Positions 4,969-51,760 of a stretch of 64,000 bases of DNA are shown in pieces (within the stretch, counting starts at the first letter, position 1; every line of letters starts with the position of its first letter). Location: the sequence record MW812341.1; one strand, 5' to 3'. The position numbers and the translations under genes were made by a program. The notes beneath the pieces were generated by a model, which saw only the letters and a list, made by a program, of their open reading frames with translations, ran no database searches and was not told the origin of the DNA.

Positions 4969-5775
4969 TTAACGGATGGAATCCACAGTCTTACCGTGAC
5001 GGTTCGTAATGTAGACTTCATCACCCTGATAGATAAACTCATAGACAGCACGAGTGGTATCCGGGAGTAAACCATCTGGGTTTATATCAGAGGCATCGTA
5101 CGACAGTACGCCGATGATAAGGTCGGTTGAGCGATTACCACGACGTGAAGCTTTTAATACCACTTCCTGAGGAAGAGCTTCGCTATCATGATAAACGTAT
5201 TGGAGTTCCACTGATGAAACTTCCGTTGGTTCACCGCCTTCCAAATCGTCGCAGTTGTAACCTGCCCATAACGTGTCGCGATTATAAACCGCAATACGAA
5301 TGTTCTCAGCTTGTACAAAATCAAGCGTAGTACGGCGAGTATCAGGATCGCTGTTTGGAATAGCCGCGAAGGTCAAGTCATCGGTGCCTGGTGGCACGAG
5401 ATAGAATGCTTCGTTAACTGTACCTGCCAGAATGTTTTTCTGGAACTCATCGAAGTTGAAGAACCACGTCGCACGATTAAATGAGGTGATACCAGGAGAT
5501 AACTCTTTAACTAAAGCAATGAGTTCTTCTGGGCTCGGGTCTTTAGCCTCGTATGCGGTAGTGAACTTATCTACCCACACATCGATAGATTCAGGCTTGC
5601 CGTTAATCTGCGGCTTCGCGTCCATAGTAGATTCAATCGCGTCCATTGTAACGCGAGACTCTTTCAGTAACGCCATCGCATCTTTAAATACCTGAGACTT
5701 TGAATCACCTAAGGTAGGAGACTCGTGTTCAGTTGGTGTGCGGTTACCATTGATTTTACGTAAGATAGTAAACAT
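4969..5775 (-). CDS. hypothetical protein (268 aa)
   Basis: Long ORF, AGGAGT RBS. Confidence 0.85.
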   Translation of the reverse strand: MFTILRKINGNRTPTEHESPTLGDSKSQVFKDAMALLKESRVTMDAIESTMDAKPQINGKPESIDVWVDKFTTAYEAKDPSPEELIALVKELSPGITSFNRATWFFNFDEFQKNILAGTVNEAFYLVPPGTDDLTFAAIPNSDPDTRRTTLDFVQAENIRIAVYNRDTLWAGYNCDDLEGGEPTEVSSVELQYVYHDSEALPQEVVLKASRRGNRSTDLIIGVLSYDASDINPDGLLPDTTRAVYEFIYQGDEVYITNRHGKTVDSIR

Positions 5776-6024
5776 AAACTACTCCTGCTTTTGCTGCTGT
5801 TTCTATTGCTTCTATTGTTGTTAGTGGCTTTTCCCCCACTGGGGCTCTATCCGTAAGTTGAGAAAAAAACAAACGGCTAAAGATGGTTCCAGCCACCACA
5901 CCCCGGAGGCAGCCATGCAGGTGGCGACAAAAGGTGTGATGGCCGGAATTTGGTTCTGTGTTACCCCCGACCATGAATGATATTTTTTCCGGAATGTCTT
6001 TCGGGAAAAGGGTAACACAAAATG

Positions 6025-6100
6025 TGGCGGTACCGACAGGGCTTGAACCTGTGACCTGATGATTAACAGTCATCCGCTCTACCAACTGAGCTACGGAACC
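6025..6100 (-). tRNA. tRNA-Asn(GTT)
   Basis: 76-nt cloverleaf, loop CT-GTT-AA, T-loop TTCAAGC, encoded CCA; one U-U mismatch in acceptor stem. Confidence 0.92.
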
Positions 6101-6109
6101 ATAATGCAA

Positions 6110-6190
6110 AGACCGTGGGTGGACTCGAACCACCAGAACCGGTAGGAATCGAACCTCCTGCATCCTAGGATGTTTTCCCAAGACACGGCC
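6110..6190 (-). ncRNA. tRNA-like RNA with two T-arm motifs and no anticodon arm
   Basis: Acceptor GGCCGTG/CACGGTC, T-arm GGTGG-TTCGAGT-CCACC, second AGG-TTCGATT-CCT hairpin upstream; no CCA. Confidence 0.55.
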
Positions 6191-6197
6191 ATAATAG

Positions 6198-6297
6198 GGC
6201 GAACGAAGACAGGATTCGAACCTGTGACCAAGATACCCGCCGGGTATCTCGCTATCCGATTATGAGTCGGGTGTTTATGCCTCTAACTTCATCGTTC
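6198..6297 (-). tRNA. atypical tRNA(CAT) with long variable arm and 8-nt acceptor strands
   Basis: CCGA-CTCATAA-TCGG anticodon arm, GAGATACCC-GGC-GGGTATCTT variable arm, ACAGG-TTCGAAT-CCTGT T-arm, GAACGATG/CTTCGTTC acceptor. Confidence 0.7.
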
Positions 6298-6298
6298 T

Positions 6299-6363
6299 TG
6301 TTTCTGCTGGATTTGAACCAACCTCGTCATTTGGGTGACGACCCCAGACCGACCGGGAGAAAC
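6299..6363 (-). ncRNA. miniature tRNA-like RNA (Trp-like, 6-nt anticodon loop)
   Basis: GTTTCT/AGAAAC acceptor, CCC/GGG D-arm, TCGTCA-CCCAAA-TGACGA arm, GTTGG-TTCAAAT-CCAGC T-arm. Confidence 0.5.
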
Positions 6364-6365
6364 CT

Positions 6366-6590
6366 TTGTAGGGTGAACGCTTGCCATTTAAGGCGGGACT
6401 GATTCTCATCTGCTGGAGCGACGCCGCATAGCACGCTAATTTAAATGAAAAGGCCGCGTTCATTGAATCGAATTGACCGGAGAGAAAGGTGGCTCGTTTT
6501 ATCTCTCGCACTTGTACCCATGCACCCATAGTGAGTCGCTGGGCGGCTCCTTTAATGCGACTCGGGCTGTACCCTACCGTGCTTTCGGTC
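6366..6590 (-). ncRNA. candidate structured ncRNA (about 220 nt)
   Basis: Closing helix GTAGGGT/ACCCTAC, internal GAGTCGC/GCGACTC, GAGAGA/TCTCTC and ATGAA/TTCAT helices; lies inside tRNA array. Confidence 0.5.
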
Positions 6591-6594
6591 AAAC

Positions 6595-6682
6595 TGGCGG
6601 AGAATGAAGGATTCGAACCTTCGGGCCCCTAAGGACCACTCCCTTAGCAGGGGAGCACTTTCGGCCTCTCGGTCAATTCTCC
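6595..6682 (-). tRNA. tRNA-Ser(GCT)
   Basis: 88-nt class II cloverleaf, loop CT-GCT-AA, G73, CCA. Confidence 0.95.
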
Positions 6683-6687
6683 AGATA

Positions 6688-6763
6688 TGGCAGTGCCGAT
6701 GGGGTTTGAACCCACGATCTCTCCCGTGACAGGGGAGCGTCTTAGCCACTCGACTACGGCACT
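6688..6763 (-). tRNA. tRNA-Asp(GTC)
   Basis: 76 nt, loop CT-GTC-AC, G73, CCA. Confidence 0.95.
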
Positions 6764-6768
6764 AAAGT

Positions 6769-6846
6769 TGGGGTGTACGGAGGGACTTGAACCCTCGACC
6801 TCTGACGTCACAAGCCAGAATTCTAACCAACTGAACTACATACACC
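6769..6846 (-). tRNA. tRNA-His(GTG)
   Basis: Loop TT-GTG-AC, G-1:C73 pair, CCA. Confidence 0.95.
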
Positions 6847-6852
6847 ATTAAT

Positions 6853-6935
6853 TGGTGGAAGCATCCGGTATAGCACCGGCCTGGAAGGTCACGGGTTTTT
6901 CACCATGAGTTTCCGAAGCAGCGAGCTTTACTTCC
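6853..6935 (-). ncRNA. CCA-terminated tRNA-like RNA with 8-nt Phe-like loop and variant T-loop
   Basis: GGAAGTA/TGCTTCC acceptor + A + CCA; TCATGG-TGAAAAAC-CCGTGA arm; CCGG-TGCTATA-CCGG T-like arm. Confidence 0.5.
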
Positions 6936-6944
6936 GCTGTTACT

Positions 6945-7108
6945 CAGGAGTAGGCGTGTCATGACGCCTCGTGTTAGTTGCTCGCCTGTGACGGCGCTAC
7001 CTTTAGGGCATCCTAGTGGGGAGTCGAACCCCAATTGCATCCGGCTTGACGCGGGATACAACGTTCCACAACCTAGGCGTTTGAAAACGAACCCCTAAAG
7101 CTCTCCTG
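6945..7108 (-). ncRNA. structured RNA with an embedded, end-less cloverleaf
   Basis: CAGGAG/CTCCTG and CTTTAGGG/CCCTAAAG enclosing helices; inner CCTAG/CTAGG, GTT-GTGG-AAC, TTGTATCC/GGATGCAA, TGGGG-TTCGACT-CCCCA. Confidence 0.6.
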
Positions 7109-7114
7109 CTAATT

Positions 7115-7190
7115 TGGTTCTCCCACGGGGATTTGAACCCCGGTTAACCGCTCGAAAGGCGGCGATCCTAGACCGCTAGATGATGGGAGA
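7115..7190 (-). tRNA. tRNA-Glu(TTC)
   Basis: 76 nt, loop CT-TTC-GA, CCA. Confidence 0.93.
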
Positions 7191-7196
7191 ATTGTT

Positions 7197-7273
7197 TGGT
7201 ATTCCCGACGAGATTTGAACTCGTGTACCGACAGTGAAAGTGTCGTATCCTGGACCAACTAGATGACGGGAAT
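7197..7273 (-). tRNA. tRNA-Glu(TTC), second divergent copy
   Basis: 77 nt, CGACA-CTTTCAC-TGTCG, CCA. Confidence 0.9.
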
Positions 7274-7278
7274 ATATT

Positions 7279-7370
7279 TGGCAGAGAGACTGGGATTCGA
7301 ACCCAGGGAGAGCTTTCGCCCCCAACGGTTTTCAAGACCGGCCCGATAAACCAGACTCCGGCACCTCTCT
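7279..7370 (-). tRNA. tRNA-Ser(TGA)
   Basis: 92-nt class II cloverleaf, loop CT-TGA-AA, G73, CCA. Confidence 0.95.
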
Positions 7371-7375
7371 ATAAA

Positions 7376-7451
7376 TGGCAGTGCTAACGGGGCTCGAACC
7401 CGTGACCTCCGCCGTGACAGGGCGGCGTCCTACCAACTGGACTATAGCACT
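7376..7451 (-). tRNA. tRNA-Asp(GTC), second copy
   Basis: 76 nt, loop CT-GTC-AC, G73, CCA. Confidence 0.95.
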
Positions 7452-7575
7452 AGAATTTGCGTCTGCTTGCTTGAGAGAGTCTACCTCTCGCACTATTTCA
7501 CACCCCGCAGATAAGGGAATCGCGCAACCGCTAGTATAGGTGACTAACCAAACCGCAGGGTTACGTTCTCGTGAC

Positions 7576-7651
7576 TGGTGGTTCCGGCTGGTATCGAACC
7601 AACGACCGCGCCATTATGAGTGGCGTGCTCTACCGACTGAGCTACAGAACC
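7576..7651 (-). tRNA. tRNA-Met(CAT) elongator type (or Ile2)
   Basis: 76 nt, loop CT-CAT-AA, G1-C72 pair (not initiator), CCA. Confidence 0.92.
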
Positions 7652-7655
7652 GAAT

Positions 7656-7732
7656 TGGTTGTCTCGAGTGGACTTGAACCACTGACCTCCCGCTTATCAG
7701 GCGAGCGCTCTAACCAACTGAGCTACGAGACA
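7656..7732 (-). tRNA. tRNA-Ile(GAT)
   Basis: 77 nt, loop CT-GAT-AA, CCA. Confidence 0.95.
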
Positions 7733-7741
7733 TCAAACTGA

Positions 7742-7892
7742 TTGGGACACAGAGAATCGAACTCTGGACCGTGACATTGTCGGTTACTCTAGACCGCTAT
7801 GAGCTACACACCTAGCAGTCACGCTAGGCAAGGGAGGATTCGAACCACCGACCTTCCGACTCTGTCACACTTTACCACTAAGCTATATCCCA
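7742..7892 (-). ncRNA. twin-tRNA RNA: two tRNA bodies fused through their anticodon stems
   Basis: Outer TGGGATA/TGTCCCA acceptor, D- and T-arms; anticodon loop replaced by a circularly permuted second cloverleaf. Confidence 0.75.
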
Positions 7893-7898
7893 ATAAAT

Positions 7899-8019
7899 TG
7901 GCAGCCGCTATAGGACTTGAACCTATAACCTCATCACACCGCACCACACTTGCACGCCATGGACGCCTATGCATAGTTAAAGCGATGTTCTGTCTCTATC
8001 CACTTGAGATTAAGCGACT
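7899..8019 (-). ncRNA. CCA-terminated tRNA body with about 44-nt expanded anticodon loop
   Basis: AGTCGCT/AGCGGCT acceptor + G + CCA, TCTC-AAGTGGATA-GAGA D-arm, CATCGC/GTGATG stem, ATAGG-TTCAAGT-CCTAT T-arm. Confidence 0.65.
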
Positions 8020-8025
8020 AATGTT

Positions 8026-8103
8026 TGGTGCACCCGGCTTGCCTCGAACAAGCGACCTCGGGGGTTTCACTCCCGCGCTCTGACCAATCTGAGCTACAGA
8101 TGC
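8026..8103 (-). tRNA. tRNA-Phe(GAA)
   Basis: 78 nt, loop GT-GAA-AC (unusual G32), CCA. Confidence 0.88.
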
Positions 8104-8110
8104 ATAATGA

Positions 8111-8185
8111 TGGAAGGGGCATCTGGATTTGAACCAGAGCATACAGGGATCAAAGCCCTGGGCCTTACCGCTTGGCTATACCCCT
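8111..8185 (-). tRNA. tRNA-Gln(TTG)
   Basis: 75 nt, loop CT-TTG-AT, CCA. Confidence 0.93.
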
Positions 8186-8191
8186 AGAATT

Positions 8192-8273
8192 TGGTGGGGG
8201 AGGATGGATTTGAACCACCGTGTGGGATAACAGATTTACAGTCTGCCGCGTTCGACCGCTCCGCCACTCCCCC
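8192..8273 (-). tRNA. tRNA-Tyr(GTA)
   Basis: 82-nt class II cloverleaf, loop CT-GTA-AA, CCA. Confidence 0.95.
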
Positions 8274-8279
8274 GTATTG

Positions 8280-9040
8280 GGTGCCAGGGCACCTCGCAAC
8301 TCCTACACACCGGCAAGCGTACGCAACGCAACGCCCTGTGCAGCAACAACGAGATTCCCCGACATATAACAAAGAAAACTCATTCGTTAGAATTCGCTTT
8401 GTTATCATCGACATATATAGGGATAAAACTGTAATTGGACTTTCAGAGTGAGAATGAGGGTGATGGACTTCTTCTTCTGAGCCAGCGTATCCGCCGGTCT
8501 TAGCGTCTCCAAGCACCACCCTCTTTCACATTACCATTGGGATAACTTGTCCCACGACGGGGGGTTATCTCCAGCGACACACAGCCGCTTCAACACTTTA
8601 TAGGAACTTAATCCCATCAAAGATTTTCAGATTGTAGTATTACAGGCGTTAGCTTAGCGGTTTAGCAGTCCGGTGCTGGCCTGTCCGTTACGGACACATA
8701 TTTCCACGCAGGAAGATGTCTGTATCGGGAACCCTCACGGGAACTCCCACCGCCTGTAAGCCAGTAATGGGCAAGTGACCAGTGTCGTACGAAAGCCCAA
8801 ACGTCCTTTATAGAACGAATGAATTCGCGCACAAGCTCTTTTAGTCCTTGCATATATAAGGGCTCTCATCGAGTAAGTTAGTTTACGGTCAGTTACCTAC
8901 CCCTGCGGGTAGTGCTTTGTGTAACCGGCTATCAGCGACTTACTGGTGTGCGCTGAGTCTCAGCTGATACCGTATCGGACGGGATACCAGCCCGGCCAAA
9001 TGAGTGGTACACACGGCAACGGTTGGAAGCCAACCCCAGC
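8280..9040 (-). ncRNA. candidate large structured ncRNA region
   Basis: About 760 nt with no convincing gene; many perfect helices (ATAACAAAG/CTTTGTTAT, TTACAGGCG/CGCCTGTAA, TGTCCG/CGGACA, CTACCC/GGGTAG, TATCAGC/GCTGATA). Confidence 0.45.
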
Positions 9041-9045
9041 GTTAG

Positions 9046-9879
9046 TTACTGTTTCGTCCCCATCACACGAGAAGTGTTCTTGAGGAGAATACTCGATACC
9101 GATTCGAGCAAATCATCACCCGCGTCTGTGTTAGCCACAACCAGCGTGGTGGTACACGGTACGCTAACCTTATCACCAAAGAAAGCAGCAGCGTTAGTCT
9201 CTACCTTCTCTTTGGTGTAAACGGACTGGCCATTAGGCAGTCTGTCGTTAACGTTCCATGTGCTCATGTCAATCAGCTTCAAGCCAGAGCTATCTTGATT
9301 AACGGCATCGAGGAATTTGTTATTCTTACCCGGAGCAGATACCCACAGGAATGCATCGTATTCCCCTGTCGCCACTTTGGACAGAGAACGAATGCCACCC
9401 TTCGCGTAGGTTTCAGCTTTAGAGTATTCTTTTACCAGCAGCTGGAGGTATTGCCAGCTTGCGTAGGAACCGGAGTCTGGGTCACCAACAGCAATCTTCG
9501 CACCGTTGGTCAAATCACCGGAACCGCTAATCTTGCCGTCTTTCTTGACAGCTACCCAAACACATTCACGTCCCAGCTGACCAACGATGTCAACCTTCTG
9601 TGCTTCGTTCGGATGTTGCTGACGCCAGTATTGAAAAGCATCAGCTTGCGTGAACCCAATCTGGGCTTCACCGCTAGAAACTTTATCGAGGTTGTCAGAA
9701 GACCCCTTCGATGGGATAACGCGTGCAGTATTGCCGAACTCATTCAGCGCCCCTGCCAGATTAACACCGTATACAGAGTTGTAAGTCAAACCCTGCTGAC
9801 CGGTGGTAATGATTACTTCCTGTCCCGCCATTGCTGAGAAACTCAGCGCAGCCAATAAACCAATAAGAACCTTTCTCAT
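9046..9879 (-). CDS. TAXI-family (TRAP-associated) periplasmic solute-binding protein
   Basis: Signal peptide MRKVLIGLLAALSFSAMA; TAXI-type motifs ITTG..G..Y, SKGSSDNL, AQIGFTQAD, IAVGDPDSGS. Confidence 0.8.
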   Translation of the reverse strand: MRKVLIGLLAALSFSAMAGQEVIITTGQQGLTYNSVYGVNLAGALNEFGNTARVIPSKGSSDNLDKVSSGEAQIGFTQADAFQYWRQQHPNEAQKVDIVGQLGRECVWVAVKKDGKISGSGDLTNGAKIAVGDPDSGSYASWQYLQLLVKEYSKAETYAKGGIRSLSKVATGEYDAFLWVSAPGKNNKFLDAVNQDSSGLKLIDMSTWNVNDRLPNGQSVYTKEKVETNAAAFFGDKVSVPCTTTLVVANTDAGDDLLESVSSILLKNTSRVMGTKQ

Positions 9880-10700: not shown

Positions 10701-10776
10701 TGGAGGGGTGAACCGGATTTGAACCGGACTAATTTGGATTTGCAATCCAACGCCTAACCACTCGGACCATCACCCC
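10701..10776 (-). tRNA. tRNA-Cys(GCA)
   Basis: 76 nt, loop TT-GCA-AA, U73, CCA. Confidence 0.93.
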
Positions 10777-10804
10777 AGTTGGCGAACCGTAGTCCGCCGT
10801 TTAT

Positions 10805-11047
10805 TCAGCCTGCACAGAACGATTCGTGAACGACAGTCCCTTCTGGATAGTGCGTAGTCCCGATAAAAGTGACGGTCAGGGCTAACCCTTCATCCCACTC
10901 ACTTTCATCGCGCCAGCAACAGTCCATCCAATGACCCCGACTTGGACGAATTGCACACGCGGCCTGCTCCGTAGGAGCGGCAACGACTATGGAATCAAAT
11001 TCGTCGTAATCAACATCGTCCGTTCGTTCTAGCAAATACAAGTTCAT
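10805..11047 (-). CDS. hypothetical acidic protein (80 aa)
   Basis: ORF with GGAG RBS between tRNA genes. Confidence 0.75.
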   Translation of the reverse strand: MNLYLLERTDDVDYDEFDSIVVAAPTEQAACAIRPSRGHWMDCCWRDESEWDEGLALTVTFIGTTHYPEGTVVHESFCAG

Positions 11048-11113
11048 GAGGATTCTCCACTAATTGACAAAATTGTGTCATCTGTGGTGAGTCATGTACC
11101 TGTTGGCTAAATT

Positions 11114-11189
11114 TGGCGGGGGCACGAGGTCTCGAACCTCGAACCTTCGGTTTTGGAGACCGACATTCTGCCAATTGAACTATACCCCC
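11114..11189 (-). tRNA. tRNA-Trp(CCA)
   Basis: 76 nt, loop CT-CCA-AA, G73, CCA. Confidence 0.95.
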
Positions 11190-39799: not shown

Positions 39800-41413
39800 C
39801 TACTGGAGCAGCGAGTTGATCGCACGCTCAATAACGTCGTTAACGGGGGCTACTTTAAACTTGCCGTTAGTTGTAAACCAGTAGTTCTTGGAGTTCACCC
39901 AGCGCTGGTTTTCTTCCATTGCTTCCTGCGAGAACGGAACGTTACCGGAGCCGGTATCGCCGTCGTAGTCACCGTTCAACCCTTTCAGTCGTGAAGGGTG
40001 CGGTGCCATAGATTCAACCCACGTCGGAACATTACGATCCGGGAAGCTAACAGCTCCCTTCTTCTTCGTGGTTTCCCAGTCATCTTCCAACTCGTGGAGA
40101 TACAAGGAAGAGACCGTGGTCTCCAATCTTATGGTCGAGGAGTACGTCGAACCGCGCCCGATAATAGGGTAGCGGGTGACGAACATGAAGTAATTATTCC
40201 AGAGGTCATACCCGGATAGGTACAACAACTCGCCGAGAGAAATACCACGAACGTTCTTACGGTCAAACTTCGCAGGCAAATCCTCAATGTCAAAGAACAC
40301 TTTAAAGTGTTTGGCGTCCTGATAGATCAAGGCCACGTAGTGGTCTTTGTCAATCATCAGTGGAGCATGGCGCAACTCACGCGCTTCCAGACGGTTAATC
40401 AACTTCTCTATCCCGTCATCGGTGGTGTATAGGTCATAGACCTTCCCACGGACTTCGAGGAGTTCCCTTCGCAGGGTTTTGGTGTTGATGCCGTAGAGGT
40501 TCCCGTCACCCGCTCGGATATTGCTCAGATAACGTTCGCGAATGTTATACTGCGCTACCGGCAACAGTGACTTCAACCCCTGGAACAAACCGACACGCGT
40601 GTCGGTCGCCCGCACCTGGTCTTCACGACCCATGACTTTCGAACCGGTTGAGAACGAAGACAACACGTTACGTGTGCCGTTCATTAACTTACGGGAAGTC
40701 ACTTTACGGCGGGTAAAGCCGCCCTTACCATCGAGGATGTTAAAGAAGTACATCCAGATGTCGTTGTACGCTTGTTGAAGTTTCCAACGTAGTGGGTCAG
40801 TCAGTTCCGTTTGAATATTGCGGTCTGGGACAGCACGGGCTAATGAGATGAGACGACGGTACATACCGCCGATTTCTTCTTCCTGGTCTCGTCCGTCATC
40901 TCGCACAATCAGGTCACGCAGACCTGCTGGCAAAACCAAGACATGGCGGTTTACGCTCACGTCACGGAATTTGTAGAAGAAGTCGAGAGAGTCATCACGT
41001 CGCATAGAGTCGTTACGCGCAGGCGCTAACTCTTTATAGTGACTCAAGAAGAAGTTCATGCCGGTGTCTGCACCTTTATCACCGGGCAGCGCTGGCAGGA
41101 AGTCTTTTTCTTTTTCTCCCCACACCGCAAACCGTTTACCGGCACAGACTTCCTCGTAGAGTTGTTTTAAACCAAACAACCCTAAACAGACAGTAGGAGA
41201 AATGATGTCGAGTTTTACATCGATGTACGCGAACGTAGCGTCACGCTCTTCGCTACCTGTTAAGCCGAATATTTCGGTAGAATAAAGACCTTCCGGGTGA
41301 AAGTTTTTCGTCATGCCCTGGAAGGTGTCGGTCGTAGTCACCGGCTTCAATTGTGACACCAGGGACTTGTTGACGTTTAACAGGTAAATGTCAACCCAGT
41401 TTAGCTTCTTCAC
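39800..41413 (-). CDS. virion RNA polymerase beta' subunit with catalytic DxDGD motif (phiKZ gp180-like)
   Basis: NGDYDGD motif, GLYSTEIFG, LVLPAGLRD; GTG start at 41413 with AGGAG RBS. Confidence 0.9.
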   Translation of the reverse strand: MKKLNWVDIYLLNVNKSLVSQLKPVTTTDTFQGMTKNFHPEGLYSTEIFGLTGSEERDATFAYIDVKLDIISPTVCLGLFGLKQLYEEVCAGKRFAVWGEKEKDFLPALPGDKGADTGMNFFLSHYKELAPARNDSMRRDDSLDFFYKFRDVSVNRHVLVLPAGLRDLIVRDDGRDQEEEIGGMYRRLISLARAVPDRNIQTELTDPLRWKLQQAYNDIWMYFFNILDGKGGFTRRKVTSRKLMNGTRNVLSSFSTGSKVMGREDQVRATDTRVGLFQGLKSLLPVAQYNIRERYLSNIRAGDGNLYGINTKTLRRELLEVRGKVYDLYTTDDGIEKLINRLEARELRHAPLMIDKDHYVALIYQDAKHFKVFFDIEDLPAKFDRKNVRGISLGELLYLSGYDLWNNYFMFVTRYPIIGRGSTYSSTIRLETTVSSLYLHELEDDWETTKKKGAVSFPDRNVPTWVESMAPHPSRLKGLNGDYDGDTGSGNVPFSQEAMEENQRWVNSKNYWFTTNGKFKVAPVNDVIERAINSLLQ

Positions 41414-41442
41414 GTTAAGCTCCTGAATTGGAAGTAATGAAA

Positions 41443-44400
41443 ATGGCAAAAAAAGACGATTTCGACGATATCGGTTTTGATGATGTCGATTGGGATGATT
41501 TCGACGAACCGCCCCGCCAGAACAACGGTAAATCACGCAACCCTATCCTCGACACAGCGAAGCAGGTACGTAAGTCTGCTCTGGCGACCATATGGCCGCG
41601 AGGTAAGCGCGACCAGGTCATTTTAAAAGGCATGCCACAGCCTGCGAGTGAAGCCTACAAGGGCTATCAGGACGCGAAGGGCGTGGCGAAAGACGTGTAC
41701 GCTCATACCAAAGACGAGATCATCAAGACTGAGCGTCTGGTCAAGCAACAAGCCCGTCAATTAGGCCCAACGCTTAAACGTTATCTGCCCGATAGCCTGA
41801 CAAACCGAATCAACAAATGGGCACGTACCGGAGAAGAAACACAGTACGGTGCGTACGACCAGCAACAGGCTGGTCTTGACCGAATGATGGGCGAGGTCTT
41901 CGGTGCCGGTCAACAACAGACCGAAGAGCAACAAACCGAAGCCCGCGAAACTGCAACTGAAGATCGTCTGCGTGATGCTGTCCGGGAAATGAAATCCGAT
42001 GCACTGATGAACACTGTCCTGGGCATTGCCCGTGACGTTCACATGCAAACCGGTCTTTCCAAAGGCGTGTTCTTAAACATCGAGCGTAAGAAGCTCGAGT
42101 TGCAATACCGTACGTTGTTCGCCTTGCAAGATATTGCTAAGCTGAAACAAACCGAGTTCGACCGTAACACCCCGGCACTCGAAGCGATTGTGAAGAACAC
42201 CGCGTTGCCGGACTATGCGAAAGAAGAGTTCTCGGAAATTCATTGGGCGAACATTAAACGTAAAGCGGCTGAATGGATGAACCCACTTCGTTACGGCGAA
42301 GAGTTCATGAATAACGTCCGTGACAACATGACCAAGAAAATCTCACAAGCATTCGGCGATGGCCGTATGGCGCTTGAGATGCTCATGGGTAGTGCGGTCG
42401 AAGATGACTTCGGGATGGAAGACAGTTCCAGCCTGTCGCCAGACAGCCGTAAGAAGAATGGTCGCGATAAAGGGGTGGGTTGGTTAACCAGCTTCCTGAC
42501 CAAGAAACTGATTGGGCCACAACTTGCCAAAGTGCAGGGGAAAACCAAGCAGTGGTTGGAAGACAGACCCGAGTACATGTCAAAACTCCACCAGGCGCAA
42601 TTTAAAGCCCGTGGTTGGACGCAAGGCACAATCTCGAACTCATCTATAGCCGGGGAAGAAGAAGGCACAGCGGCTAACGTGTTTCGCATGGGACGTGACT
42701 TCGGGATTATCAACCCGATGGGTCGCGAAAAGGGTTTCCTTGATGCCCGCGACGGCGAAGCCTTAAACCGTGTTGCCAAGTTCGACCGGCGTGCACATTT
42801 AGCATTGGTGGAAGTTATCCCGGCCTGGTTATCCGAGATTAACAAATCTATCCGTCGTGGCTATGGCGAACATGCTGACCAGGAATACGACATCACTACG
42901 CGTGGCTTTACGTCACGTCGTCAGTTGTCTGACCGTATCCGTAAGGGTGTGGCGGATGACAAAGGTCGTGTCAAACAGCAGGAGAACATCTGGGAAATCG
43001 TTAACTACCTGGATGACAAAAAGACCCTGAGTGAGAAAGACCGCCAAGGTCTGGCTAACTATTTAGAAAGCCGTATCTCTCTTGGTCGCTCCATGAACGT
43101 CGATAGCATCCTTAAAGACAGCAACCACTTAATGCGTTACATGCCGTCCAATACGGCTGACCGTGTGGTTGATTTGTTGAGAGCGAAGTCGGATGGGATG
43201 ACTGGCGGTGCGTACGAGCTGTCCAACGCATTGGAAGATAAGTTCTCCGGTGCGCGTTCAGCTGTGAAGGGATACCAAAAGAACATTGATGAAGCCACCG
43301 CCATTTATGGTGAGCGTGCGCTACGCGATGCGGGTATCTTCCGCTACGACAAAAAGAATGATACGTTCGACATCGACAAAGACTTCGCCGATCCGTTCAC
43401 GCTGTTTAATGACACCCGCATGGGCAAAACCCGTAGTGGTAAGGCATTAACACTTGAGCAGGAAATTCAGAAGAAGTTAAAAGGTAACTCAGCGCTGGCT
43501 GATTTGCTGCGCCGTAAGTTTAACAACGGAGGTGACGAAGATGACCCATTGGCGGAAGGCAGTCCTTTAGGGGGCGGTCCGAAAGGCGGCGGGGGCGGTG
43601 GTAAAGGTCGCGGTAAAGGCATGTCTCCAGTTCAGCTGGCTCGTGTGCTTTACGGTGAAACGGAGACCAACTTTGTCGACTTGCTGAAAGGCACGAACAG
43701 TAACGATGGAACTGAGACCGATCGTATCGTTGAGGCCGTCCGTGGTATCAACCTGAACTCCCTGACCACTATTCAGGAGAAAATCCTGAGTCATGTGAAG
43801 TCAATGGATGAACAGGGTGTGTTGCTTGCTTCTCTCGCCGGTGGTGAAGGTGGTGGTGACGGTACCGATGAGATGGGTCCACCGCGTCCGGGTGCAGGGC
43901 CACGTCGACGTCGTATTGTCCTGGGTGAAACCGGACTGTTACGTCGTTGGGGTGGGATTCTGGCAGATACTGCCGGGGGTGCATTCAATCTCGGTAAGCG
44001 TGGTGTCCTCGGTGCGAAAGACCGCTTAGGGAAGTTCGGTGGTTGGGTACGTGGTAAGTTCGGTGGGCCTTCCACTGGGCCGAGCATGTTCGAACGCATG
44101 AAAGGTTTGGTGACTGGTGGGGTCGGTGGTGCCTTTAACTCAGCATTGGCGTTTGGCCAAGGGTTACTCGGTATCAAAGACATATTCAACGAACAGGGTA
44201 AGGTTGTCCTCCAGGGTAGTAAGCTGGAAGCTGGGGAATATTACCAGATGTCCTCTAATGGACAAGGTGCCAAACCGGTTCAATTGAAGACCCTGGATGA
44301 CATTCGTCTGGGTCGTGACATTATCGACTCGGAAGGGAACATCATCCTGTCTGCGGCTGACTTAGCCTCAGCCGGTAAGTTGAGCTACTATAAAGGCGGC

Positions 44401-47400
44401 AAGATTCAGAGCCTGTTCCAAGCTATCGCCCGTAAAGGCGGGGAGTTCGGTAACAAGGTACTGGGTGCGCCGAAACGTATCCTCGACAAAATCGCCCCAC
44501 GGTTTAAATCCGCACGGGAGTGGTTCACCAACATCCCTGACATCTACGTTAAAGGTGATACGCAGCCTCGTCTGTATGCCAACCTGATGCGTCAAGGTCA
44601 TTACATTAACGTGGCATCTAAACAGCCAGTGTATAAAGTCGAGGACATCACTGGGCCTATCGACGATATCAATGGCAACAATGTCATCTCTGCAAGCGAG
44701 CTACAGAACCCCGAGTTCAAACTGGTAGACAAGTGGGGCCGTCCTGTCAAAAGCCCGTTAGGACGCATTGTAGGACGTATAGGACGTATTGCTGGTTGGG
44801 GTCGCGACCTAATCATGGGTATTCCTGGACGTTTACGTGCAGCCGGGTCGAGCTTGAAGAACATGGCGCTCAATAACCCAATCGCTAACTGGTTTAAAGG
44901 TGGCGGTAAAGGGGGTGGCTTCCTCAGTGGTAACACATTGTTCGGTGGCATGGGGACAGGGCGTAAAACCAACCATATCCTGATTCGCATCTACAAACTT
45001 CTGAACCAACGTCTTGCTGGGGAACCAGAGGATGATTCTTGGACAGAAGAGATGGAGAAAGGGACAGGTGGGTCGAAGTCTCTGGAACGCGCGCTCCGTA
45101 AAGGGAAGGTTGCTGGTCGCTTGATGAAACGCCGATTCCGTAACCGCTTTGGCGGTCGTATCAATTCCGGTCGGAGTTGGTTAGGTGGGAAGCGTGATGC
45201 ATTGAAAGGCTGGTTCGGTCGCTTAGGTGGTCGAGCAAACAACGTCTTGGATTCTTTCCGTGGTGCAGAGCACGACATCGGTACACGCTACGAAATCGAA
45301 AAGCATCTGTTAGGTCGTGACGACGACGTGGCAGCATTCTATCGTGACCGTTTGCATCGCCGAGGCGGTATCTCTAAAGCCAAAGTGCGTTCAGCAGTAA
45401 TGGACGACGTGGAAGAAGCGAAAGACGCAGCTGGTAACGTCATTAACACTGGCCGTAAGAAAGTTCAATCGGTAGGTGCTCGTGTGCTCGACCGTCTGAA
45501 CAAGATGGTTGACCTGCAAGAAGTCACCTGGTTCAACACGATGCGCTCCTCTTTGGAGAACAACGGGGCGGGTGAAGGTTTCGTGCGGGGTATGATGAGT
45601 AAGTTCTCTCGTCGTGTGAAATTCAACAGCGGTGGCGAGAAACGTGACTACTTCCAGTGGTTCCGTCGCCGCCGTGGCGAGCACGATGATGGGGCAGCCG
45701 CCGGTTCTGGCGGCGGTGGTAAAGGCAAGGGCAAAGGGATTATGGACTTCTTCAAATCCCTGCCGTTAGTCGGGCCACTGGTTTCTGTATTGGGTAGCGT
45801 AGCTGGCATCCTGGGCACCGTTGCGAAATGGGGTATCTTTAAACCGGGTGCGATGTTAGCGAAAGGTGCATGGGGTATCGGTAAGTTTGCGGTAACGCAA
45901 GCACTGCCATTCCTGGCCCGTTCGGTTATCATGCCTGTTGTCTCTGCTGCGGGTGCTGTGGTGACGGCTGTGGGTTGGCCGGTTATCCTTGCGGTCGGTG
46001 CCATCGTTGGTACCGGTATTGCTGCATACCGCATCGCAACATCGACATACACCTCTTACCTCGATACCATGCGTATTGCGCAGTATGGTTATCGTGACTA
46101 CGACAAGTGGTCAAGTGAGGACGGTGCGAAAGTACGCTACCTGGAAGACCAGCTGAAACAGTTCATTGCCTTCAATGGTGAAGGTCAGGCTACCTGTCGT
46201 GGTCTGGGCGGGAAAGAAGTGCAGTCTCTGGCGGAAGGCTACGGCCTGAACATCGAAGAGAAAGGGGAAATGTTGGCGTTCCAAGCCCACATGCTCCAGC
46301 GCTTCATTCCGGTATACTTACGTTGGCTGACCACACTGAAAGCAATGGATAGAGATATCCAGTTGTCCGAAGTGGGCGATGCTGCGAAAGTCACCAAAGA
46401 AGAGATGTTGGCAATCTATGAGAAAACCGCATTAACGAAAGACGCAGTCCAACTGCGTGCTCTGGAAGACCCGCGTAAGGTTAACCAGGGCTTCATGTCT
46501 AAAGCTTGGGATACGGTAACCTTTACCTCACCTCAGTTCCTGGATGCTTCGGAAGTTATCGAGGTTCAGGAAGATACGTTGAGAGAAATCAAGAAACGTA
46601 TCGACACGAAGAAGAACCGTAAGATGCGTACCTTGCTTGCCAAGGGTCAGGAAGTCACTGGGGTGAAAGATGCCTTTGCGGCCCTGAACACCATGGATGC
46701 TGATACTGAAAAGAACTATGTGAAGAAGGAAGGTTGGGAGGACGGTACTGAATCTATCACGATTCAGGTCGATGCCTTGGGTACGTTGAACCAGCGTGAT
46801 GTCGATGCGCTGGAGTCCGTAAGGATGAAGACCTACGGGTTGAAGAATCTGGATTCGGGCTATGTGGCAATGCTGAAAGAGATGGAGAAATTCGTCTTGC
46901 CATTCATCAACACCAAAACGGGCTCGTATAACGGCAAGTGGACAGAGGCAACGGATATCGTTGCGCCGCAAGTATGGCAGACCCCTCGTGGGGATTCCGT
47001 ACACCACTGGTTCGTTAACCGCTTCTTGCCGACGTTTATGTTCTACGTGTGTGGCTTCAAACGCTACGACCCTGCCGGTGACCCACTCAATGTGAAGATG
47101 ACCGGTGGCTACCTGTACGAACTGGGCTTACTGACCTCGCGTGCTTACAACATGCGTGCCGGTATTCGTCAGTCCGTGTGGGAAGTGGCGTTAGTACCTT
47201 GGTCTGAAGACGGCGCGAACACCGACCCTAACTCGGTCGAGAAGGAACTCATCACGCTGAAAGAACTGTCCAAGCAAGCTGACTTGAACATCCGTAATCT
47301 GCTCAACGAGAAGAAAGTGGACAACAAGAAGATTGCACAGTGGCAGTCTAAAGACAAACGTACCCACATCTACGAAACCAAGGATGACATCGAACGTTCA

Positions 47401-48810: not shown

Positions 48811-48814
48811 CTAA

Positions 48815-48842
48815 AGGGGGAGGCAACTCCCCCTCTTCTTTA
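48815..48842 (+). terminator. hairpin after tape measure gene
   Basis: AGGGGGAG-GCAA-CTCCCCCT followed by CTTCTTT. Confidence 0.55.
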
Positions 48843-48856
48843 CAAGTGAGGTTACT

Positions 48857-51040: not shown

Positions 51041-51081
51041 AAAAAAAATAAGTGCCTCCCTACCACCTTCGGGTGGTAGGG
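51040..51081 (-). terminator. intrinsic terminator
   Basis: CCCTACCACC-TTCG-GGTGGTAGGG with A-run on +. Confidence 0.75.
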
Positions 51082-51149
51082 AATTTAACCCTAAGTCAAA
51101 TTGGGGTTAATATGCCGTCATGGTGATGGCCTTAATAGAGGGAATTAAG

Positions 51150-51710
51150 ATGAGCCTTTTTGGAAAAACGGCGAAAGAACTGGTTTATGATCTACTCGTT
51201 TCAAAGAACCCACTCTTGGCCGAAAAGAATGTGACTATCGATAAGTTAATCTTCGCAACTCCGAGCCATATTGGTGGTACGGATGAAACCCCAGAAGAGA
51301 AATACGGTCGCTTGAACACATCTTTGAAAGTAAGCGGCGATACAGATAAGAATGTAATCGGTGATGTTCAATTAACATACCGCAGGATATTCTTAGACCA
51401 CCTTTTCGATGGTATGGTGTTATCTGTTGACGGCACTGGCGCGACTACCACGTTAGACCTCTTGCCTAAAATCACAACGAAGTACGGTATCGTTATTCAG
51501 CCCAGCGAAGTAAAGAGTCAACCGGTTAGCGGTAGTAAGGCTACGGTGACAATGAACGGAAGCTCGTTAGCGTGGATAGGTAACTTCGATGTATTTCTTA
51601 CAGACATGCCCGCCGACACCACCGACCTTACTGCAATGGCTAAAGTCACTCAGCTGGAAGGTCTTGTTTATAGCCTTGATGGTATAGGGTCTGATACACC
51701 CACTGAATAA
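51150..51710 (+). CDS. small virion structural protein (about 186 aa)
   Basis: RLNTSL.V, VQLTYRRIFL, TTLDLLPKI..KYG, SLAWIG pattern typical of jumbo-phage tail-associated repeat domains; GAGGG RBS. Confidence 0.65.
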   Translation: MSLFGKTAKELVYDLLVSKNPLLAEKNVTIDKLIFATPSHIGGTDETPEEKYGRLNTSLKVSGDTDKNVIGDVQLTYRRIFLDHLFDGMVLSVDGTGATTTLDLLPKITTKYGIVIQPSEVKSQPVSGSKATVTMNGSSLAWIGNFDVFLTDMPADTTDLTAMAKVTQLEGLVYSLDGIGSDTPTE

Positions 51711-51760
51711 AAAAAGAAACACCTACCCCAGCGGGTAGGTGTTACCTTTATATTTTTTAA
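51709..51760. terminator. bidirectional intrinsic terminator
   Basis: ACACCTACCC-CAGC-GGGTAGGTGT with A- and T-runs. Confidence 0.8.

Follow-up and report, generated by a model that had tools for sequence, protein, structure and literature searches.

A minus-strand tRNA array interleaved with conserved structured RNAs in Erwinia phage pEa_SNUABM_9, a probable small-RNA operon

The window analysed here, a 64,000-nt stretch of record MW812341.1, belongs to Erwinia phage pEa_SNUABM_9. This jumbo phage is a Machinavirus and is placed in the Chimalliviridae, in line with the preliminary description of the locus. The minus strand of the window bears a tRNA operon with 14 working-type tRNAs and folded non-coding RNAs. 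ARAGORN identifies 13 tRNAs on this strand between 6025 and 8273, each also matched by Rfam: tRNA-Tyr (GUA, 8192-8273, 61.6 bits), tRNA-Gln (UUG, 8111-8185), tRNA-Phe (GAA, 8026-8103), tRNA-Ile (GAU, 7656-7732), a standard tRNA-Met (CAU, 7576-7651), tRNA-Asp (GUC, 7376-7451), tRNA-Ser (UGA, 7279-7370), two copies of tRNA-Glu (UUC, 7197-7273 and 7115-7190), tRNA-His (GUG, 6769-6845), a second tRNA-Asp (GUC, 6688-6763), tRNA-Ser (GCU, 6595-6682) and, last in the array, tRNA-Asn (GUU, 6025-6100). Genes for Cys and Trp tRNAs lie farther along. All 13 encode their CCA end, and so do two of the unusual elements described below, m3 and m6. The units of the array are separated by 1-9 nt, the tRNA-like spacing noted earlier.

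The fourteenth tRNA, the atypical CAU tRNA of the preliminary description (6198-6297, minus strand), is added by the Rfam tRNA model, which matches 6201-6296 with 39.1 bits against a threshold of 29. It has a standard 7-nt CAU loop, does not encode CCA, and carries in its variable region an insertion of about 24-25 nt that forms a hairpin. This hairpin is found only in SNUABM_9, ChrisDB, SNUABM_4 and SNUABM_6, and its stem pairing survives the changes between them. The gene is the orthologue of a tRNA annotated in relatives as tRNA-Ile2(cat) or tRNA-Met(cat). A genuine tRNA with such an odd extra arm lends some weight to the idea that other elements of the array are unusual decoding tRNAs, for instance ones that contain an intron, have acquired a new identity or shift frame by means of an enlarged anticodon loop. 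We consider this idea very improbable, and the observations that bear on it are given with m2, m3, m4, m5 and m6.

Beyond tRNA-Asn, a terminator-like hairpin followed by a T run (5872-5897, minus strand) probably marks the end of the operon. A scan for sigma-70 promoters gave fewer matches than expected by chance; chimalliviruses transcribe their genes with polymerases of their own.

Between the tRNAs lie six tRNA-shaped elements (m1 to m6), all of which had been recognised before with boundaries correct within 1-2 nt. The T-loop word GGTTCRANTCC, with at most one mismatch, occurs 24 times in the whole window against 8.5 expected, and seven of the matches fall in parts of the array that ARAGORN does not call as tRNA, against an expectation of about 0.1. 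The tRNA-shaped elements are therefore more than chance. Their changes cluster in the anticodon arm, while an acceptor-type stem and the T arm are retained. The GG of the D-loop is kept in five of the six elements and a canonical T-loop as well in four; these are the parts read by RNase P and the CCA-adding enzyme. The G-U pairs are valid solely on the minus strand, as had been argued from the folds. The elements were compared with each other and with real tRNAs, and they have only T-arm words in common. Their likeness to 326 real tRNAs extends no further than a word of 14-21 nt, mostly in the T arm, and so no mimic is a recent tRNA copy. The mimics are several unrelated lineages, and not the single family that had been proposed.

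The odd elements could be decaying or recombined tRNA pseudogenes, the functionless debris of a fast-changing array. Array content does differ strongly among phages that are 94% identical over the region, and m1, m5 and m6 are all missing from ChrisDB, the closest relative. For m2, m4, m6 and the inner module of m5, however, relatives occur in other phage genera with stems held by compensatory changes, and this covariation refutes the pseudogene reading for these four. The preliminary description had named absence or random decay in close relatives as an outcome that would count against it; for the same four elements the comparison gives the opposite outcome, and they are not products of random decay. 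The lack of any tRNA likeness beyond a short word also speaks against decay from tRNAs, and for the array as a whole we hold the debris explanation to be improbable.

Also in its favour is m1 (6110-6190, minus strand), a singleton whose acceptor-type stem has 7 bp and whose two T-arm motifs, with T-loop words at 6121 and 6145, could reflect recombination. No relatives were found in 50,697 phage records. In ChrisDB, which lacks m1, the CAU tRNA adjoins tRNA-Asn directly. The folding z-score of m1 is -2.7. The element m3 (6853-6935, minus strand) is cloverleaf-shaped with an ACCA end, and it lacks both the canonical T-loop and the D-loop GG. Its folding z-score is -3.7, and none of 200 shuffled sequences was equally stable. 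A covariance-model search found no divergent homologue of m3; its known relatives are nearly identical, with one substitution in ChrisDB and one in SNUABM_6. In SNUABM_10 it is identical although the adjacent array blocks are only about 85% identical, which argues against debris. An 8-nt loop with a Phe-like GAA triplet could be taken as a decoding feature. The claim of non-random change focused on the anticodon arm thus stands for m2, m4, m6 and the m5 inner module, while m1 and m3 lack comparative support.

The smallest element, m2 (6298-6364, minus strand), adjoins the 5' end of the CAU tRNA and folds as a mini cloverleaf with an 'anticodon' loop of 6-8 nt. It occupies the same position in Machinavirus, Erskinevirus and Seoulvirus, and is annotated as 'tRNA-OTHER' or 'tRNA-Asp' in SPN3US-type records. 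Compensatory changes are seen in 9 of 21 pairs, across the acceptor, T and 'anticodon' stems. ARAGORN calls m2 a tRNA-Gly(CCC) when its thresholds are relaxed and, in intron mode, m5 a tRNA-Met with a 58-nt intron. These relaxed calls need a score threshold of 80% and come amid many obviously false ones. The loop of m2 is free to vary among relatives in both letters and length (3-8 nt), and position 33 is not U in either of the two 7-nt loops inspected, which does not fit a decoding tRNA.

In m4 (6945-7108, minus strand), a terminal helix (P1) and a second helix (P2) surround a tRNA-like module (7012-7077) along with a small hairpin, and a 3' core of two hairpins (6945-7008) is nearly invariant in sequence across the family. 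Compensatory changes affect 15 of 53 pairs among five sequences. The family has 24 distinct members. In the model-based alignment 93.7% of the cells are paired, compared with 35-44% when the partners are slid, and both sides change in 44 of the 53 pairs, matched by none of 500 shuffles. This alignment is fitted to the structure and is biased towards it. P1, P2 and hairpin 1 were checked independently with regex anchors, and the outcome supports the alignment, although the script was written in-house. None of 185,579 bacterial and archaeal genomes matched the core pattern, and the top Rfam match of m4, mascRNA-menRNA at 24.6 bits, is under its threshold of 42.5. On this comparative evidence m4 represents a well-supported RNA family restricted to phages.

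Twenty of the 24 members, in unrelated phages, have a same-strand tRNA within 1 kb. The other four are without a tRNA in the available flanking DNA; one of them (L046) is near a contig end, and two (L017 and L018) are followed by a T run of their own. Residence in a tRNA array is thus usual, not obligatory. The tRNA-like module has the normal order in the window and a permuted order in two members (L043 and L045), where it scores 30.7 bits with the YrlA model of bacterial Y RNA. In every module inspected the anticodon-like loop is non-standard, and neither m4 nor m6 has a correctly placed 7-nt loop, again unlike a decoding tRNA. As the module can be swapped while the core is invariant, the module looks accessory and the core functional.

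In m5 (7743-7891, minus strand) the outer frame consists of an acceptor stem (7 of 7 positions paired, two as G-U), a D arm, an anticodon stem and a T arm. The outer anticodon stem runs on into an inner module (7780-7860, minus strand) with the order entry stem, T arm, closed acceptor-type hairpin and D arm, a permuted tRNA-like domain. The nested fold has a minimum free energy of -51.7 kcal/mol, compared with -33.2 when the halves are folded separately. Reading m5 as two tandem units was rejected: scored with the tRNA model, these reach only 26.7 and 16.6 bits, and four and two of their acceptor pairs, respectively, are broken. The predicted folds describe m5 as a nested double unit rather than a simple mimic. 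The inner module is kept in Wellingtonvirus SNUABM_11 (L032, about 2500-2575), where both strands of the entry stem have changed and a single base of the D arm is different, so the 'intron' of the ARAGORN call is a conserved permuted module. The arrangement is shared with YrlA, but YrlA membership is not supported: the SNUABM_11 sequence can be aligned over the full length of the Rfam YrlA model, yet its score of 19.1 bits is below the threshold of 69.

The last of the six, m6 (7899-8019, minus strand), encodes its CCA and has a 7-bp acceptor stem with a U3-G70 pair, GG in the D arm and a T arm of canonical form, but its anticodon arm is swapped for a hairpin of about 60 nt. The orthologue in Erskinevirus Asesino (L031, 2503-2634) is 76% identical and keeps all helices, with compensatory changes in 7 of 36 pairs, a count from two sequences only. 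The Rfam tRNA model matches just the T arm (13.9 bits).

Three further blocks are predicted to be conserved folded RNAs without tRNA likeness, and none of them matches Rfam 15. Immediately 3' of tRNA-Asn lies the long hairpin elA (5954-6022, minus strand), found in Machinavirus and Erskinevirus with a conserved inner sequence and compensatory changes in 4 of 20 pairs. Together with the terminator-like hairpin it accounts for the structure proposed for 5830-6020. The second, elB (6481-6581, minus strand), consists of two hairpins whose large loops hardly vary, and 10 of 22 pairs show compensatory changes; one member has an extra hairpin inserted. Pseudomonas jumbo phages (HPP-Temi, D6, Psa21) as well as uncultured viral contigs have copies with 84-87% identity, and a 48-kb Vibrio phage has one with 77%. 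All ten members, in unrelated phages, have a same-strand tRNA within 1 kb, and a search with the elB core pattern through the 185,579 bacterial and archaeal genomes found nothing. The third, elD (8452-8527, minus strand), lies upstream of the first tRNA and is a long hairpin with internal loops, a folding z-score of -3.0 and compensatory changes in 11 of 25 pairs among eight phages of four genera; it is 97% identical in Seoulvirus SNUABM_29.

Structure had also been proposed for all of 6366-6590 and 7452-7575. In the first block it holds for elB; the spacer at 6366-6470 (minus strand) is conserved over its last ~40 nt (6366-6405, 88-97% in relatives), and a GenBank CDS at 6275-6529 that covers this spacer meets stops in relatives. 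The second block, blkC (7452-7575, minus strand), is conserved in sequence (96-97% in ChrisDB and SNUABM_4, 79% in Wellingtonvirus), but the proposed structure is not borne out, with a z-score of +0.37 and compensatory changes in only 3 of 30 predicted pairs. Tentatively, elA, elD, blkC and 6366-6470 may not be free RNAs but may act in cis within the operon, for example as its leader, attenuator or terminator or as processing sites. The positions of elD, which in Stratton and Asesino lies 7 nt ahead of a tRNA-Gly, and of elA, between the last tRNA and the terminator-like site, are consistent with this. On the other hand, elB shifts its position within the arrays of unrelated phages as a gene would, and no promoter was recognised.

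Across phage genera the elements described here are conserved, with helices maintained by compensatory changes; they are confined to phages and move together with tRNA arrays. We estimate a probability of roughly 60% that this stretch forms one small-RNA operon on the minus strand, in which tRNAs and conserved structured RNAs are processed together and the latter likely bind protein. The use of one strand, tRNA-like spacing throughout and one terminator-like site past the last tRNA agree with this. Two sorts of RNA would accompany the tRNAs. The first, m2, m4, m5, m6 and perhaps m1 and m3, takes the upper half of a tRNA as its base: the acceptor-type stem and the T arm are kept, as is usually the D-loop GG of the elbow, and either something else stands in for the anticodon arm or a larger fold encloses the entire module. 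The second, elA, elB and elD, has no tRNA likeness. Among known RNAs, T4 RNA C/D and bacterial Y RNA (YrlA) come closest.

We infer that the structured RNAs are transcribed jointly with the tRNAs, excised and stable. Release would proceed by tRNA end-processing, with RNase P acting at the 5' ends and trimming enzymes at the 3' ends, and the flanking tRNAs together with the elements' own tRNA-like modules would serve as a handle for cutting, stability and protein recruitment. In bacterial Y RNAs the tRNA-like domain is a substrate of tRNA enzymes, according to a published study (PMC4201824). Sequence invariance is strongest in the m4 core and the elB loops, neither of which is tRNA-like; this suggests that the function resides there, with the tRNA-like module as an accessory. 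The replaced arm or the appended invariant core would then bear the actual function, most likely the binding of a protein tied to tRNA handling or translation, as the invariant loops and junctions suggest.

The preliminary description, whose observations hold at their core with the corrections given above, had interpreted the array as counter-defence: the tRNA-like RNAs would titrate anticodon nucleases or other tRNA-directed defence proteins, and the standard tRNAs would replace cleaved host tRNAs. Its premises are partly supported, in that the phage is a chimallivirus and the elements are conserved and structurally constrained, but the decoy function itself is unsupported. In favour of decoys, tRNA shape is under selection while decoding is lost, and the families are phage-only and patchy among unrelated phages of related hosts. 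Accessory conflict genes are often patchily distributed. Elements of the array are also gained and lost like cassettes among close relatives, and the standard tRNAs cover Asn, Asp, His and Tyr as well as Glu and Gln, classes that include classical anticodon-nuclease targets. However, anticodon nucleases recognise the anticodon loop, and in the mimics this loop is missing, non-standard or hypervariable, the opposite of what is expected for a competitive substrate. The greatest constraint falls on non-tRNA-like parts, and elA, elB and elD do not mimic tRNAs in any way. The argument that the chimallivirus nucleus leaves RNA exposed is not specific either, since the m4 and elB families also occur outside the Chimalliviridae, together covering Ounavirinae, Mimasvirus and the 48-kb Vibrio phage. 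Published reports describe phage tRNAs that can rescue infection from tRNA-cutting defences and counteract PARIS and retron effectors (PMC10264068, PMC11464382, PMC11555353). We regard the decoy function as rather unlikely overall, although the RNAs could be decoys for proteins that recognise the elbow or the acceptor end.

Of the region 8280-9040, which had been described as structured RNA, the hairpin elD holds, while 8662-8853 (minus strand) is an unannotated protein gene of 63 aa upstream of the array. The protein has no match in Pfam. By tblastn it is 76-95% identical in Machinavirus relatives and 32-38% in other phages, and the frame is open in SNUABM_10, SNUABM_43, SNUABM_6, SPN3US, Proteus phage 7 and SNUABM_11.

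Besides standard tRNAs, the array carries folded RNAs that are under selection, confined to phages, associated with tRNA genes and placed on the tRNA strand with tRNA-like spacing. The region 5700-9200 of the window corresponds to positions 67700-71200 of the 247-kb record MW812341.1 (Erwinia phage pEa_SNUABM_9) with 100% identity. The preliminary description regarded the phage as a chimallivirus, which is correct because its genus, Machinavirus, is placed under Chimalliviridae in the 2026 NCBI taxonomy. The array is bounded by a TAXI/NMT1-like solute-receptor gene (9046-9879) and by a hypothetical gene starting at 5775, and all array features discussed here are on the minus strand. ARAGORN finds 13 tRNAs between 8273 and 6025, all confirmed by Rfam, which adds a CAU tRNA. 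The six tRNA-shaped elements described earlier, here m1 to m6 or "mimics", are real, and their boundaries had been placed correctly to within 1-2 nt. Their tRNA-like spacing is likewise borne out, as the array spacers are 1-9 nt long. For the T-loop word GGTTCRANTCC, with at most one mismatch, 8.5 occurrences would be expected in the window and 24 are present. Seven of these (6121, 6145, 6212, 6309, 7020, 7836 and 7913) lie in the array outside the ARAGORN tRNAs, where the expectation is about 0.1. The CCA end is encoded by 13/13 standard tRNAs and, among the odd elements, by m3 and m6.

A tRNA-Cys and a tRNA-Trp are found at 10701-11189 on the minus strand, 2.4-2.9 kb upstream of the main array. 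Small protein genes, coding for a TerB-domain protein and for hypothetical proteins, lie between the two tRNAs and between them and the array, and this layout is kept in all relatives.

Among the odd elements, the threshold of the Rfam tRNA model (RF00005, 29 bits) is reached only by the CAU tRNA, with 39.1 bits. The two halves of m5 obtain 26.7 and 16.6 bits and m6 13.9 bits, the latter from its T arm only, and m1, m2, m3 and m4 give no match at E-values up to 10. None of m2 to m6 has the anticodon arm of a decoding tRNA, in which a 5-bp stem carries a loop of 7 nt with U33 and, at position 37, a purine. The loop of m2 varies between 6 and 8 nt, and position 33 is not a U in either of its 7-nt versions. 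In m3 an 8-nt loop sits on an interrupted arm of 10 bp, m4 and m6 carry long hairpins, and the anticodon stem of m5 runs into a second module. An acceptor-type stem is present in all six mimics. Together with a consensus T arm and a GG in the D-loop, an acceptor stem is found in m2, the m4 module, m5 (both outer and inner unit) and m6. m1 has a T-loop word and an acceptor stem without a clear D arm, and m3 lacks the canonical T-loop and the GG. When ARAGORN was allowed introns and run below its default thresholds, its many calls contradicted one another and were discarded as evidence.

It had been proposed that the mimics titrate nucleases that cleave tRNA anticodons. This fits poorly, because the anticodon-like loops are the least conserved parts of the mimics. 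As decoys, they could act on tRNA-directed defence proteins that read the elbow or the acceptor end; the decoy explanation as a whole we consider improbable. The current interpretation of phage tRNA arrays is that they respond to defences which cut tRNAs, and in this respect the array resembles those of the phages with counter-defence tRNAs. In the published cases, the tRNA-Lys of T5 counters PARIS, a tRNA-Tyr counters retron effectors, and anticodon-loop variants are described (PMC11464382, PMC11555353, PMC10264068). However, counter-defence tRNAs such as those of T5 decode and replace the cut host tRNAs, and the mimics are non-decoding. The literature searched contained no non-decoding tRNA mimic acting as a decoy, and no report of non-decoding tRNA mimics in phage arrays.

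The comparison with related phages also bears on whether the odd elements are simply the debris of tRNA genes. As the preliminary description had suggested that such alignments might reveal, m2, m4, m6 and the non-tRNA-like RNAs elB and elD covary, and the entry stem of the m5 inner module changes on both sides. Such an origin is excluded for m2, m4, m6 and the inner module of m5. It may apply to m1 (6110-6190), for which no relative was found in the phage collection. Compared with 326 real tRNAs from the compared loci, the likeness of the mimics never extends beyond a word of 14-21 nt, mostly in the T arm, and they are therefore not recent copies of array tRNAs.

m2 (6298-6364) adjoins the 5' end of the CAU tRNA in three genera. 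In the SPN3US-type phages the element in this slot is standard in its acceptor, D and T arms, but its "anticodon" hairpin has a stem of 4 bp and a loop of 3 nt; the records label it "tRNA-OTHER" or "tRNA-Asp". The elements of Machinavirus and Erskinevirus have a remodelled D arm and a freely varying loop of 6-8 nt. Covariation is seen in 9/21 pairs, located in the acceptor, T and "anticodon" stems. Judging from the aligned sequences, m2 is a conserved non-decoding tRNA-like RNA. m6 (7899-8019) has acceptor, D and T arms and CCA, and a hairpin of about 60 nt replaces the anticodon arm. The copy in the Erskinevirus Asesino is 76% identical and keeps every helix, with compensatory changes in 7/36 pairs, a count taken from two sequences only.

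According to our model, m5 (7743-7891) is a nested double unit. Its outer ends pair as a 7-bp acceptor stem, followed by a D arm and an anticodon stem that leads through a small internal loop into an entry stem bearing a permuted tRNA-like module (7780-7860), and an outer T arm closes the frame. A minimum-free-energy comparison favours the nested fold over separate folding of the two halves by 18.5 kcal/mol. We dropped the reading of m5 as two tandem pseudogenes in favour of this fold; the halves have four and two broken acceptor pairs. The inner module is kept in the Wellingtonvirus SNUABM_11, where the entry stem is altered on both sides, the D arm differs by one base, and the outer frame is different. 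We also rejected the possibility that m5 and m6 contain introns, as the inserts are conserved structured modules whose removal restores no anticodon arm.

m3 (6853-6935) folds into a stable cloverleaf with an ACCA 3' end and a folding z-score of -3.7. It is identical in SNUABM_10, where the adjoining array blocks are about 85% identical. A covariance model of m3, used to search for diverged relatives, matched only true tRNAs, and these weakly. Since no diverged relative was found, the evidence for the m3 structure is its folding energy.

The CAU tRNA (6198-6297, minus strand) matches the Rfam tRNA model over 6201-6296 and has an anticodon loop of standard form, with a 25-nt insertion in its variable region. 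Its orthologue in Seoulvirus, Erskinevirus and other Machinavirus phages lies at the equivalent place and is annotated as tRNA-Ile2(cat) or tRNA-Met(cat). The 24-nt hairpin in the variable arm is found only in SNUABM_9, ChrisDB, SNUABM_4 and SNUABM_6, and the pairing of its stem survives substitutions. The gene is best read as coding for a probably working tRNA with an unusual, lineage-specific extra arm. In bacteria, long extra arms belong to the Leu, Ser, Tyr and Sec tRNAs, not to CAU tRNAs. Compared with class II tRNAs and tRNAs with unusual cloverleaves (PMC5389517), the CAU tRNA resembles those of class II in its long variable-arm hairpin; unlike in class II tRNAs, the hairpin is a lineage-specific insertion in an otherwise ordinary gene of the tRNA-Ile2/Met type.

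m4 (6945-7108) is the best-documented of the elements. Two helices, the terminal P1 and a further one, P2, surround a small hairpin together with a tRNA-like module (7012-7077). In this module an acceptor-type stem of 5 bp is combined with a D hairpin of 3 bp, whose loop contains a GG, and with a canonical T arm, and a long, variable hairpin replaces the anticodon arm. Downstream of the module lies a core (6945-7008) of two hairpins whose joining strands are nearly invariant. BLAST identifies relatives with 75-81% identity in the Seoulvirus SNUABM_29 and in Moabitevirus-type Serratia and Pectobacterium jumbo phages, and the core without the module is matched in Ounavirinae (Arno162, Wc4) and in the Mimasvirus CBB. 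A search with the core pattern found 8 viral and 17 metagenome contigs, and the family now has 24 distinct members. The same pattern gave 0 matches in 185,579 bacterial and archaeal genomes, and a search of the full-text literature for the core strings found nothing relevant. A same-strand tRNA is located within 1 kb of 20/24 members.

Across the family, P1, P2 and hairpin 1 are formed by many differing complementary sequences. In the covariance-model alignment 93.7% of the cells are paired, compared with 35-44% when the partners are slid, and both sides change in 44/53 pairs, a value that no shuffle equals; the alignment was fitted to the covariance model and these numbers are thus biased towards it. 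The topology of the module differs between members: the loci L043 and L045 have it in the permuted order T arm, closed hairpin, D arm, and the module of L042 comes close to a standard cloverleaf, with a loop of 5 nt.

The family model also gives weak but significant matches in the Pseudomonas jumbo phage D6 (L014, 1853-2049) and in the related contigs L026 (10158-10286), L028 (880-948) and L030 (2794-2938). These four loci carry elB as well, i.e. the two families co-occur beyond this phage. The array of CBB (L012, 1295-1367) and several metagenomic arrays (L021, 29-103; L044; L048) contain a tRNA with anticodon CTA, amber-reading and named "tRNA-Pyl" by the predictors. In CBB and L021 this tRNA is the immediate upstream neighbour of the m4-family element.

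Three further conserved folded RNAs show no likeness to tRNA. elB (6481-6581) is 84-87% identical in the Pseudomonas jumbo phages HPP-Temi, D6 and Psa21 and in uncultured viral contigs, and 77% identical in a 48-kb Vibrio phage. All members lie within 1 kb of a tRNA on the same strand, and the elB pattern had no match in the scanned bacterial genomes. Its two hairpins covary (10/22 pairs), its large loops are almost invariant, and one member has an additional inserted hairpin. A loop-loop or pseudoknot pairing in elB, examined by eye, found no support in the Vibrio member and was abandoned. elD (8452-8527), which precedes the first tRNA in four genera, is a long hairpin with compensatory changes in 11/25 pairs. 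elA (5954-6022) is a conserved hairpin directly after the last tRNA and is itself followed by a terminator-like hairpin with a T run. Two other blocks had been described as structured RNA. The block 7452-7575 is conserved, but a fold could not be demonstrated, and the block 8280-9040 contains the elD hairpin but also a protein gene at 8662-8853.

The elements come and go as units. ChrisDB is 94% identical to this array over the common parts, and lacks tRNA-Phe, m6, m5, m1, elB and the run from tRNA-Asp (7376-7451) to tRNA-Glu (7197-7273). In SNUABM_4 a tRNA-Leu is present instead, and m6, the m5 inner module, elB, elD and m4 recur in other genera. The array is a mosaic in which whole cassettes are gained and lost, not the product of gradual decay.

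Non-tRNA small RNAs in phage tRNA clusters are already known, as are tRNA-like domains in non-coding RNAs. Searches of the region, of every gap and of the related loci with Rfam 15, under gathering as well as permissive thresholds, gave nothing except tRNA matches and sub-threshold matches of shape. The CAU tRNA is the only one of the odd elements to reach the threshold of any family, and the m4-type core and elB match no Rfam 15 family. Default ARAGORN finds no tmRNA, only low-quality permuted calls appear at an 80% threshold, and the best matches to the Rfam tmRNA models are 6.8-10 bits; a tmRNA or permuted tmRNA was therefore discarded. The best Rfam match of the m4 module is the mascRNA/MEN-beta family (RF01684), with 24.6 bits on 7010-7079 against a threshold of 42.5. 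The two share a tRNA-like cloverleaf that is part of a longer transcript, has a small D hairpin and lacks a real anticodon loop. The mascRNA/MEN-beta family is eukaryotic, and its tRNA-like end is a handle for cutting by RNases P and Z. The m4 module and mascRNA are unrelated, and the likeness is one of shape only.

The closest precedent by position is RNA C and RNA D of T4, small non-tRNA RNAs co-transcribed in a phage tRNA cluster, with a role unknown (PMC3014915). The elements here are also non-tRNA genes in a phage tRNA cluster, on the same strand and without an ORF, counted so because the ORFs overlapping them have stops in relatives. Unlike in T4, the RNAs are many more, and several have explicit tRNA-like modules and relatives in many genera. 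Sequence similarity to T4 RNA C/D was not detected, no T4-type record being among the distant blastn matches of any element.

By architecture, the elements resemble the bacterial Y RNA YrlA (RF02553), the partner of Ro60/Rsr, in that a stem formed by the ends is combined with a tRNA-like domain that has T and D arms and does not decode. The permuted order of YrlA (T arm, closed acceptor-type hairpin, D arm, attached via a stem) is found in the m5 inner module, in its SNUABM_11 relative and in L043 and L045; unlike YrlA, the m4 module of the window is in normal order. The YrlA model (threshold 69 bits) gives no match to m4 and m5 of the window at E-values up to 10. With the SNUABM_11 relative of the m5 inner module it gives an end-to-end alignment of 19.1 bits, and with the L043 module it reaches 30.7 bits, both below that threshold. 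A 5' GNCGAA(N)G motif of YrlA is thought to contact Ro60 (PMC4201824), and inspection of m4 and m5 by eye did not reveal it. Pfam searches of the flanking ORFs gave TerB and NMT1_3 only, and TROVE proteins are described from only a small subset of jumbo phages in groups 2 and 3, outside group 1 (PMC7824862).

We favour an explanation in which each element combines a handle with a working part, and assign it a probability of roughly 0.6. The elements would be made from the same precursor as the tRNAs, from which RNase P and the 3' trimming enzymes would free them. What most mimics retain, namely acceptor stem, T arm and elbow, is precisely what these enzymes read. The tRNA-like part would then serve as a handle for cutting and stability, and perhaps for recruiting a tRNA-binding protein, and the replaced arm or the appended core would be the working part, most likely a protein-binding site. 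The roles are assigned in this way because the m4-family module changes its topology whereas the core does not, and because the invariant letters of elB are in its loops. The logic is that of the bacterial Y RNAs and of the T4 RNA C/D precedent. A wider proposal, speculative and in our opinion doubtful, is that lytic phages with large tRNA arrays share phage-only modular RNAs, each joining a mimic of the elbow and acceptor end to an invariant core, which act like viral Y RNAs without Ro60. The module would engage a host protein that handles or attacks tRNAs, and the core would recruit or block a second partner, so that the supply for translation is protected from tRNA-directed immunity or tRNA-processing enzymes are redirected.

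Several of the RNA families are apparently undescribed. A 2023 survey reports 10,006 predicted viral candidate RNAs, "tRNA-like" ones included (PMC10690425). Ever since the description of T4 RNA C and D, the non-tRNA RNAs of phage arrays have remained a gap in knowledge. In this window they prove to be numerous, conserved across phage genera, structurally constrained and in part tRNA mimics that do not decode. Sequences now suffice for models of at least three families (the m4 family, elB and elD). With such models, and with no match of the m4 and elB core patterns in the cellular genomes scanned, the function of these RNAs is directly testable.

In this and related phages the elements are unannotated, labelled "tRNA-OTHER" or covered by probably spurious CDSs. 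The ORFs 8184-8519 and 6275-6529 have stops in relatives, and their "conservation" is due to the RNAs they overlap. The second of these is the GenBank CDS pEaSNUABM9_00072 (minus strand), which overlaps m2, the spacer 6366-6470 and elB. Another, pEaSNUABM9_00076 (6961-7098, plus strand), is antisense to m4; the two CDSs are probably artefacts of annotation. The ORF 8662-8853 (minus strand), absent from the GenBank annotation, encodes 63 aa. It is conserved and its frame stays open in Machinavirus relatives as well as in the SPN3US-type and SNUABM_11 records, and in every case it is located a short way upstream of the tRNA array. The protein has a common aromatic/glycine-rich central motif and no match in a Pfam search.

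Between elD and tRNA-Tyr, at 8366-8422 (minus strand), there is a conserved inverted repeat and a short ORF whose first about 19 codons are conserved; this could be a promoter, a leader element or a tiny gene. A promoter word that occurs twice upstream, at 8412 and 8851, was dismissed, as its frequency is not above chance. A sigma-70 scan, which does not cover chimallivirus promoters, gave fewer hits than chance. Elsewhere in the window the GC skew is positive for about 10 kb, at about 41000-52000, and negative again after it, consistent with a block of genes on the other strand.
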